Shown in pieces: positions 19,785-21,770 of a stretch of DNA of 34,382 nucleotides. This DNA is from Salpingoeca rosetta (lineage: Eukaryota; Protista; Choanoflagellata). Both the position numbers and the translations under genes were made by a program. The notes under the pieces are model-generated. The model did no database searches. It saw only the letters and a program-made list of their open reading frames with translations, and had not been told where the DNA came from. The stretch is taken from NCBI GenBank assembly GCA_033442325.1, contig JAWQFM010000034.1, positions 483,060-517,441 on the forward strand, given 5' to 3'. Within the stretch, counting starts at the first letter, position 1, and each line of letters opens with the position of its first letter.

Positions 19785-19863
<79 letters not shown>

Positions 19864-19864
19864 T

Positions 19865-19895
<31 letters not shown>

Positions 19896-19990
19896 GGAGG
19901 GAGACAGACAGACACACAGCCAGACAGACACACAGCCAGACAGCCAGACAGCCAGACAGCCAGACACCACCCTGGATGAAAAAAAAAAAC

Positions 19991-20001
19991 AAAAAAAAAA
20001 A
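19991..20001 (-). terminator. Pol III oligo-T terminator of the tRNA-Ser gene
   Basis: T11 run on the minus strand, 6 nt after the discriminator base. Confidence 0.75.
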
Positions 20002-20007
20002 CAAGTG

Positions 20008-20145
20008 CGACAACGGCAGGACATTCGACAGATCCCCAGCTGCAGTGTGCTGGGGTTGTGCTTGTTCGTATCAAGGATTCGAACCTGCGCGTGCAGAGCA
20101 CAACGGATTAGCAGTCCGTCACCTTAACCACTCGGCCACGTTGTC
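20008..20145 (-). tRNA. tRNA-Ser(GCU) with a 56-nt non-canonical intervening sequence in the T-loop (exon 1 20145-20078, insert 20077-20022, exon 2 20021-20008)
   Basis: Joined exons give 82 nt: GACAACG TG GCCGAGTGGTTAAGGT G ACGGA CT GCT AA TCCGT T GTGC TCT GCAC GC GCAGG TTCGAA^T CCTGC CGTTGTC G. The acceptor (7 bp), anticodon (5 bp) and T (5 bp) stems are perfect. It has the serine-type variable arm and G73, with anticodon GCT at 20112-20110. Confidence 0.93.
20075..20138 (-). promoter_or_regulatory. Internal Pol III promoter: A-box (20138-20128) and B-box (20085-20075)
   Basis: A-box TGGCCGAGTGG and B-box GGTTCGAATCC; the last 3 nt of the B-box are supplied by the insert. Confidence 0.8.
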
Positions 20146-20297
20146 ATATGGCACTTCTTGCTTTCCTATGTCGAATTTTTTGTTTTTGAACCTAAATCTG
20201 CATGCTGTGTGCGTGTTTTGCAGCCACAGACCAAACAAACAGCGCACATTCATCCTCACCTCAAACAACGAAGTCACCACCTACCAGCCGGTCAGCC

Positions 20298-21770
<1,473 letters not shown>

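Follow-up and report, generated by a model that had tools for sequence, protein, structure and literature searches.

Can a choanoflagellate carry a nuclear tRNA gene that is interrupted in the T-loop, and how would the transcript of such a gene be matured? The question is raised by a locus of Salpingoeca rosetta located in a stretch of 34,382 nucleotides (hereafter, the window; contig JAWQFM010000034.1 of assembly GCA_033442325.1, C34:483060-517441), where the minus strand from 20145 to 20008 is a tRNA-Ser(GCU) gene with a 56-nt insert between T-loop positions 59 and 60. According to reviews published up to 2026, the introns of eukaryotic tRNAs are located at 37/38, except in a few algae and in nucleomorphs, and the four-subunit splicing endonuclease of animals and fungi cuts only there (PMC13578239, PMC10485636). 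Here we analyze this gene, its copies in the genome and comparable inserts in other RNA genes, and conclude that the locus is likely to be a functional nuclear gene with a 56-nt intron at 59/60 that is cut by the splicing endonuclease through a relaxed bulge-helix motif (hBH, that is, an exon-exon helix h, a bulge and a central helix H). The genome searches reported below were run on the 55.4-Mb, 68-contig assembly to which the window belongs.

A tRNA-Ser(GCU) gene interrupted in the T-loop

Read on the minus strand, the locus has the form GACAACG-UG-...-CUGCUAA-...-GCAGG-UUCGAA, followed by 56 nt and then by U-CCUGC-CGUUGUC-G. The gene and its immediate surroundings resolve into the following elements:

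20078..20145, minus strand: exon 1 (68 nt; tRNA positions 1-59), with the acceptor 5' strand, D-arm, anticodon arm (GCU at 20112-20110), long variable arm and T-stem 5' strand, and with the T-loop UUCGAA at its end
20022..20077, minus strand: the 56-nt insert, read as an intron at 59/60
20008..20021, minus strand: exon 2 (14 nt), with U60, the T-stem 3' strand CCUGC, the acceptor 3' strand CGUUGUC and the discriminator G73
20128..20138, minus strand: A-box sequence TGGCCGAGTGG
20075..20085, minus strand: B-box-like sequence GGTTCGAATCC, which crosses the junction of exon 1 and the intron; the copy on C9 has GGTTCGAATCT
20034..20055, minus strand: intron hairpin CCCCAGC-ACACUGCA-GCUGGGG (7 bp, 8-nt loop), kept in all five copies of the insert
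19979..20001, minus strand: terminator T11-G-T11 of RNA polymerase III (Pol III), with T runs at 20001-19991 and 19989-19979, 6 nt (CACTTG) past the discriminator
20146..20215, minus strand: upstream block of ~70 nt, ~84% identical to that of the C9 copy; the likeness stops further upstream

The signals of a Pol III gene (A box, B box and downstream T-run) are all present, and the insert is free of any run of four or more T that could stop Pol III; the first bases of the intron, TCC, repeat the start of exon 2. When the 56 nt at 20022-20077 are removed, ARAGORN calls an 82-nt tRNA-Ser(gct) with the T-loop UUCGAAU and with no defect in the acceptor, D, anticodon, variable or T stems. This sequence has the features of a class II tRNA-Ser(GCU), namely a 7-bp acceptor stem, a 5-bp anticodon stem, a 7-nt anticodon loop with U33, the GCU anticodon, a long variable arm and G18G19, and it aligns along the full length with L124 and L125, two eukaryotic tRNA-Ser(GCU) genes of metagenomic origin that have no insert (T-loop TTCGAAT). 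The latter are chance finds of a metagenome scan, which was aimed at Ser(GCU) genes interrupted in the T-loop, and serve as comparators only; the scan returned just these two intact genes, with a chance TCGAATG downstream, and no intron-bearing relative. A first-pass annotation of this DNA, made from the sequence alone, had described a tRNA-Ser with every stem intact and a Pol III terminator, interrupted by 56 nt, in an apparently holozoan protist. The coordinates and the string given there are exact, with the gene on the minus strand, and the host is indeed a choanoflagellate.

Two other kinds of intron were considered and rejected. A canonical intron at 37/38 is incompatible with the uninterrupted anticodon loop CUGCUAA and with the location of the insert at 59/60. 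A self-splicing group I or group II intron is incompatible with the 56-nt length of the insert, which also matches no intron family of Rfam even at E-values up to 10. Introns of these groups have a ribozyme core and are typically longer than 200 nt.

The interrupted gene is poorly visible to standard tRNA search tools. ARAGORN called no tRNA in the unspliced window or in the gene copies, and Rfam produced no match in the window at the gathering threshold; in the E-value mode, the Rfam tRNA model reached 26.6 bits at the locus, under the 29-bit threshold, and was misaligned as a 75-nt tRNA. The published tRNAscan-SE table for S. rosetta lists two Ser-GCT genes, at 74 and 77 nt, and marks all four Phe genes as putative pseudogenes (Southworth et al. 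2018; PMC6188563, S4b). The entries of this table could be tied to the present loci by inter-gene distances, which are equal to the base in both sources (6648 bp for the Ser-AGA pair, 758 and 8060 bp for the Lys-CTT genes, 216 bp for the Met pair and 15828 bp between Phe 5' ends). A class II tRNA with a long variable arm does not fit into 74 or 77 nt, so that the Ser-GCT calls are wrong, and the first-pass expectation that standard scans would miss or mis-call the gene holds for all three tools.

Directly 3' of the terminator, positions 19850-19968 of the window are occupied by short repeats of the (TG)n, (GA)n and CAGACAGCCAGA types.

A relaxed bulge-helix motif at the boundaries of the insert

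The T-stem GCAGG/CCUGC corresponds to helix h of the splice motif, and the T-loop bases U54-G57 come directly after its 5' strand. The remaining elements of the motif are as follows:

20080..20083, minus strand: 5' strand of the central helix H, T-loop U54-G57 (UUCG)
20024..20027, minus strand: 3' strand of helix H, intron positions -6 to -3 (CGAA), with A(-3) paired with U54
20021..20023, minus strand: 3-nt bulge UG^U, formed by the last two intron bases and U60, which separates helix H from the T-stem and holds the predicted 3' splice site
20077..20079, minus strand: AA^U with the predicted 5' splice site, two bases beyond helix H, within the loop

Cuts at the two predicted sites remove exactly 56 nt and yield UUCGAAU, and the A(-3)-U54 pair is the equivalent of the eukaryotic anticodon-intron pair. 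With the exon-exon helix h, a 3-nt bulge that contains the 3' site and a 4-bp helix H, the locus has the relaxed form of the motif, known as hBH or bulge-helix-loop (BHL); the eukaryotic hBH motif, as published, consists of one 3-nt bulge and a loop with a 4-bp helix between them (PMC3728597). The strict bulge-helix-bulge (BHB, hBHBh') form was rejected: the bases after AA^U cannot pair with the bases before CGAA, so that AA^U is left in a loop with no inner helix to close it. The pairing of CGAA with the TTCG of the T-loop (20083-20080 with 20027-20024), the bulge TG^T opposite AA^T (20023-20021 and 20079-20077) and the relaxed form that follows from the unpaired inner helix had all been recognized in the first-pass annotation and are all correct; the computed folds likewise place a loop where the inner helix would be.

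The chance of four Watson-Crick pairs in this exact register is ~1/256. The hBH fold is thermodynamically reachable: in the C9 copy it has the lowest energy of all folds, and in the window copy it lies within 0.1 kcal/mol of the minimum. For the tRNA-Phe genes discussed below, the difference from the minimum is +2.4 kcal/mol. Because TTCGAA is palindromic, helix H and the direct repeat TCGAAT...TCGAAT that surrounds the insert are one and the same feature.

Copies of the gene and the origin of the insert

A BLAST search of the genome with the 138-nt gene as the query identified the insert at five places:

C34 (the window): full gene with a 56-nt insert
C9:1700949-1701083: full gene with a 53-nt insert
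C9:1700769-1700880 (L002): 5'-truncated copy that starts near tRNA position 24, without an A box, insert present
C18:1347004-1347118: 5'-truncated copy that starts near tRNA position 24, without an A box, insert present
C18:1347186-1347297: 5'-truncated copy that starts near tRNA position 24, without an A box, insert present

The exons of the two full genes are identical at all 82 positions (68/68 in exon 1 and 14/14 in exon 2), and the 38 nt at the 3' end of the intron, which include the hairpin, a linker and CGAAUG, differ at a single position (37/38); the 5' third of the intron has diverged by substitutions and indels. The sole change in the hairpin among the five copies is a C/U difference within the loop.

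The truncated copies of tRNA-Ser(GCU) are arranged in tandem, with a spacing of ~180 bp. Tandem 5'-truncated tRNA copies are found also for Thr(CGT) (L011/L012, on C10) and not just for Ser(GCU) (L002, L003). They begin in or just before the anticodon arm, keep the terminator and are located downstream of full genes or of each other.

The first-pass annotation had asked whether an intron-less copy of tRNA-Ser(GCU) exists, and none was found in the genome with whole-gene BLAST, an anticodon-arm pattern and a D-arm pattern. Exact matches to the anticodon-arm pattern GGACTGCTAATCC occur only in the five insert-bearing copies, and the 18 matches with one mismatch, a number near the control rate, include no tRNA. 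Apart from the two interrupted Ser(GCU) genes, the serine-type D-arm pattern matched three Ser(AGA) genes and one Leu(TAG) gene and nothing else. Intact Pro genes and Gly genes with introns are missing from the list returned by the genome search with RF00005, which covers 63 of the 498 candidates, so that absence from this list does not amount to absence from the genome.

The presence of TCGAAT on both sides of the insert could be taken to mean that the 56-mer is a fragment of a mobile element, or an assembly artefact, with a target-site duplication. However, this flanking repeat is the palindromic T-loop itself and leaves a GT unexplained, so that it is not a clean target duplication. Furthermore, a pattern that combines the T-loop with the end of the insert matches the genome only at the five Ser(GCU) places, and the insert occurs nowhere else in the 55 Mb; many independent DNA sequencing runs contain the stretch and contigs span the insert, which is accordingly real DNA; and, as described below, a different insert occupies the same site in tRNA-Phe. 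This origin of the 56-mer thus appears highly improbable, and insertion of a transposon or a short interspersed element (SINE) was rejected for want of dispersed copies and of a clean target-site duplication. Dispersal of the 56-mer, an objection that the first-pass annotation had raised to its own proposal, is not observed: the sequence is confined to the Ser(GCU) copies, with no target duplication beyond the palindromic T-loop.

tRNA-Phe(GAA) genes carry an unrelated insert at the same site

Pattern and BLAST searches of the genome detected four tRNA-Phe(GAA) genes (L112-L114 and L120), and all four carry a 41-nt insert at 59/60:

C7:861940-862052, minus strand
C7:877880-877992, plus strand
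C9:847874-847986, plus strand
C9:842452-842564, minus strand

Three of these genes were first seen as weak Rfam matches (31.4 bits, 66 nt), and the fourth copy is degenerate and adjoins a run of N, that is, a gap. The genes have the form ...CCCAG-UUCGAU, a 41-nt insert and C-CUGGG-UGACGGC-A, and excision at 59/60 produces the T-loop UUCGAUC. The register is the same as in tRNA-Ser(GCU): the pairs U54-A(-3), U55-A and C56-G are followed by a G·A mismatch, so that three of the four positions are paired, and the 3-nt bulge AC^C adjoins the T-stem at the same position as the Ser bulge. The sequence of the Phe insert is unrelated to that of the Ser insert, yet it also contains a hairpin with an 8-nt loop. 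Between paralogs, the gene together with the intron is identical at 113 of 114 positions, and the flanks are only 59-72% identical. A scan for T-loop inserts over 335 kb returned only Ser-GCU and Phe-GAA, plus obvious false matches. The first-pass annotation had conceded that its proposal would suffer if no other tRNA gene carried such an insert; the Phe-GAA inserts, at the same site in all copies, dispose of this concern.

No intact, uninterrupted Phe gene was found in the genome by pattern search and BLAST, and the published tRNAscan-SE tables for S. rosetta contain no Phe anticodon other than GAA (PMC6188563). Therefore, unless S. rosetta lacks tRNA-Phe altogether, the interrupted genes must be expressed and their transcripts repaired.

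These findings bear on the possibility that the Ser(GCU) and Phe(GAA) genes with inserts are pseudogenes whose working counterparts were missed by the assembly or by the searches. In favor of it, three of the five Ser copies clearly cannot function, being duplicates truncated at the 5' end, one of the Phe genes, next to a gap, is degenerate, all four Phe genes were marked as putative pseudogenes by tRNAscan-SE (PMC6188563, S4b), and the genome search was not exhaustive. Against these points, two assemblies made years apart (the contigs of the 2018 table and the present 68 contigs) list only these genes for both anticodons, and tRNA-Phe(GAA), with the sole Phe anticodon listed for S. rosetta, is indispensable. 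Moreover, the exons are identical between paralogs despite the diverged flanks, and the inserts share position and register in two unrelated tRNAs, with excision yielding canonical tRNAs. On balance, we regard the pseudogene explanation as improbable.

Canonical introns of the same genome follow the same local rule

Many tRNA genes of S. rosetta also possess introns at 37/38, in the families Gly-GCC (36-37 nt), Ser-UGA (21 nt), Ile-UAU (32 nt), Lys-UUU (31 nt) and Arg-CCU (11 nt). In six of the six canonical intron families, the loop base 32 pairs with intron position -3, two to four of the four helix H positions are paired, and the 3' site is located within a 3-nt bulge. With the local rule thus shared by these six families, the interrupted T-arm mimics, position for position, an anticodon arm with a canonical intron (54 corresponds to 32 and 59/60 to 37/38); the local geometry shared by the two arms consists of a 5-bp stem, six loop bases and the intron. 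Because the same register recurs in the unrelated Phe insert and in the six canonical families, the pairing of the Ser insert with the T-loop appears to be more than a chance match.

The tRNA-Gly(GCC) genes form tandem pairs (contig C27; L029:1126-1433 and L031:1644-1950), and their 36-37-nt canonical introns have common ends and different interiors; the D-arm of these genes is unusual. Introns in Gly-GCC are uncommon among eukaryotes.

An insert with a predicted bulge-helix-bulge fold in the U6 gene

The only match to the U6 small nuclear RNA (snRNA) found in the genome, at C9:815095-815281 (L126:96-282), covers positions 1-68 of the 105 positions of the Rfam model and consists of ...GGCCCCUGCGCA, a 65-nt insert (after ...CUGCGCA) and AGGAUGACACGCGAAA.... 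In the unconstrained minimum-energy fold, the boundaries of this insert form a 4-bp helix UGCG/CGCA with the 3-nt bulges CA^A and UG^A and a 4-bp inner helix that continues into a long hairpin, which amounts to a near-strict BHB. Predicted cuts after the second base of each bulge would restore the conserved GCGCAAGGAUGACACGC. The insert contains a B-box-like sequence, GGTTCGATGCC, and a TATA-like sequence, TTTATAAAGG, is located ~30 nt upstream. A spliceosomal reading of the insert was rejected, given that it has no GT...AG ends.

The U6 introns of Schizosaccharomyces pombe and some other fungi are spliceosomal, that is, of the mRNA type. The S. rosetta insert resembles these in its location in the catalytic region of U6 and in the presence of a B-box-like sequence, and differs from them in the lack of GT...AG and in folding as a BHB. 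Judging by the predicted fold, the U6 insert suggests that the substrate range may extend beyond tRNA, and we take it as supporting context for the notion that such introns in S. rosetta are probably not confined to anticodon loops. The general proposition that this organism has splice sites off 37/38, located in the tRNA-Ser(GCU) T-loop, in the T-loop of each tRNA-Phe gene and in the catalytic stem-loop of the only U6 match found, is, in our estimate, evenly poised.

The splicing endonuclease, transcripts and the proposed pathway

In the S. rosetta genome, the catalytic endonuclease domain PF01974 (Sen2/Sen34-like) was detected at two loci (63.5 and 49.8 bits), the Sen54-type N-domain PF12928 at one locus (32.2 bits) and the Sen15-like PF09631 at one locus (27.9 bits); all these matches are above the curated cut-offs, and the translated fragments resemble the respective families. 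The presence of domains for all four subunits makes it likely that S. rosetta possesses a four-subunit splicing endonuclease. The four-subunit endonucleases of animals and yeast are held to cut only at 37/38 (PMC10485636).

Two raw RNA-seq runs contain reads over the locus: the insert is covered at a depth of 4-5 in the orientation expected of minus-strand RNA in one run, and at a lower depth and in both orientations in the other (positions 19800-20010 of the window were left out of the read placement as a repeat). On the plus strand, a transcript starts at ~20259-20273; its first exon ends at 20361, and the reads go on into unlike sequence. This start implies an RNA polymerase II start site ~115 nt from the 5' end of the divergent tRNA gene.

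We propose the following pathway for the maturation of tRNA-Ser(GCU). To judge from the sequence, Pol III would read through the insert, with the A box and the B-box core intact and no T-run in the way. In the precursor, the intron CGAA would pair with U54-G57, so that the 3' site falls within the bulge that adjoins the T-stem and the 5' site comes two bases after helix H. The endonuclease would then cut both sites by recognizing the local hBH motif, and a tRNA ligase would join the halves. The product would be the 82-nt tRNA-Ser(GCU) with the T-loop UUCGAAU, in which the predicted junction is GGUUCGAA joined to UCCUGC (also written as ...GCAGGUUCGAA joined to UCCUGC); for tRNA-Phe, the predicted spliced junction is ...CCCAGUUCGAU joined to CCUGGG. 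The first-pass annotation had already proposed splicing at non-canonical sites through structure recognition: this idea gains support from the motif and from the second tRNA family, and the excision and the enzyme are predicted steps.

Several considerations weigh against the proposed pathway. The intron of the window copy has an internal ACGAAC that is able to take the T-loop in place of CGAA, and in tRNA-Phe, a UUC within the intron is a rival partner for the 3' GAA, and helix H is only three pairs long. Helix H displays no covariation, because its bases are identical in every copy. The S. rosetta enzyme is likely to be of the four-subunit type that is described as restricted to 37/38 (PMC10485636). 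No spliced joint was seen in the two raw RNA-seq runs, in which the cover is thin; given that such libraries rarely capture tRNAs, this result is uninformative rather than negative. Some of the RNA reads over the region come from the 5'-truncated copies (loose end at 20122). Finally, because the genome tRNA scan was not exhaustive, a very divergent intact Ser(GCU) gene is conceivable.

Some of these considerations would also fit an insert that is removed by another combination of nuclease and ligase, or one that is retained as an expanded T-loop. The retained form is hard to reconcile with tRNA structure: with 56 extra nucleotides in the T-loop, the D-loop/T-loop elbow, on which cytoplasmic tRNAs normally rely, would be lost. 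With regard to another route of removal, the motif lacks the inner helix that a strict BHB would have, only three pairs make up helix H in tRNA-Phe, alternative folds compete with the hBH fold, and four-subunit enzymes are said to measure the mature domain with a ruler that limits them to 37/38 (PMC10485636). However, the local motif is the same as that of the canonical introns of this genome and fits the published eukaryotic definition of hBH, T-loop BHB introns are spliced in Cyanidioschyzon merolae (PMC3728597), and the U6 insert forms a near-strict BHB. We therefore consider both forms of this alternative unlikely. To return to the proposed pathway, the insert is very probably a genuine intron that requires removal, and it is most likely cut by the splicing endonuclease through the hBH motif.

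Implications and other holozoans

If the general proposition put forward above for the tRNA and U6 inserts is correct, eukaryotic tRNA introns are not confined to 37/38 by any fixed property of opisthokont-type enzymes. S. rosetta is genetically tractable and would allow one to ask how an enzyme that includes Sen54 copes with a substrate beyond the reach of its ruler. In addition, the tRNA annotation of the S. rosetta genome is wrong for two families (Ser called at 74/77 nt and Phe called as pseudogenes throughout), and analyses of codon usage against tRNA gene counts that were built on those calls need a second look.

The published tables offer a lead on other holozoans (PMC6188563). In Monosiga brevicollis, Ser-GCT is also called at 74 nt (two calls, CH991551:212569-213069), and five Lys-CTT 'pseudogenes' of 91-166 nt are listed (CH991567:250951-252741, with lengths of 91-93 nt, and CH991577:54631-54796; both in S4a); the Phe genes of this species are of the normal 73 nt, and the Ser-GCT genes of Capsaspora are 85-86 nt long (PMC6188563). 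The Ser-GCT and Lys-CTT entries of M. brevicollis may be further mis-called genes with off-position introns, which hints, as a lead rather than a test, that the trait may be old and widespread in choanoflagellates. Reviews name no eukaryotic carriers of ectopic tRNA introns other than red algae, nucleomorphs and some green algae (PMC4090602, PMC3728597, PMC13578239). We found no report of non-canonical tRNA introns in choanoflagellates or other opisthokonts, a blank that does not prove that there are none. If the only Ser(GCU) and Phe(GAA) genes of S. rosetta need excision from the T-loop, this would be the first case of ectopic tRNA introns in an opisthokont among the reports found.

Comparison with known splicing systems

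In comparison with the canonical eukaryotic introns at 37/38, the local motif is identical, including the pair between loop base 1 and intron position -3 and the 5' site after loop base 6; the difference is that the S. rosetta insert is located in the T-arm instead of the anticodon arm. In this position, the distance ruler described for the yeast and human enzymes is not applicable in the usual way.

Archaeal EndA reads the local motif only, and its broad-specificity types cut relaxed forms as well. The introns at 59/60 in Crenarchaeota and other archaea share with the S. rosetta insert the site itself, which is on the archaeal site list (PMC4090602), as well as the 4-bp helix, the 3-nt bulges and the cut after the second base. 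In contrast to the archaeal genes, the S. rosetta gene is a eukaryotic nuclear one, with A and B boxes and a T-run terminator, and its motif has no inner helix.

Introns in the D- and T-arms of eukaryote-type tRNA genes are also known in the nucleomorphs of cryptophytes and chlorarachniophytes, where they have been confirmed by reverse transcription PCR (RT-PCR) (PMC4090602). The nucleomorph introns are 3-24 nt long and reside in the highly reduced nuclei of endosymbionts of algal origin, whereas the inserts of S. rosetta are 41-56 nt long, contain a hairpin of their own and reside in the main nucleus of a free-living heterotroph.

The closest parallel is with C. merolae and other algae, in which nuclear Pol III tRNA genes have introns outside 37/38, including the T-loop (PMC3728597, PMC13578239, PMC10485636). 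As in S. rosetta, the bulge-helix motifs are strict or relaxed (hBH/BHL), standard tRNA finders miss the genes, and the introns came to light because essential tRNAs seemed to be absent. Unlike S. rosetta, C. merolae has 63% of its tRNA genes disrupted, often by several introns or by a permuted gene order, has no Sen15 that could be found, and has had its splicing demonstrated by RT-PCR. In S. rosetta, a holozoan from the sister group of animals, sequences for all four subunits are present, and the ectopic introns, which are predicted from the genes, occur so far in two tRNA families (Ser-GCU and Phe-GAA), one at 59/60 in each. The phenomenon is thus of a known kind, namely ectopic bulge-helix tRNA introns, encountered in a lineage and an enzyme context where it is unexpected.

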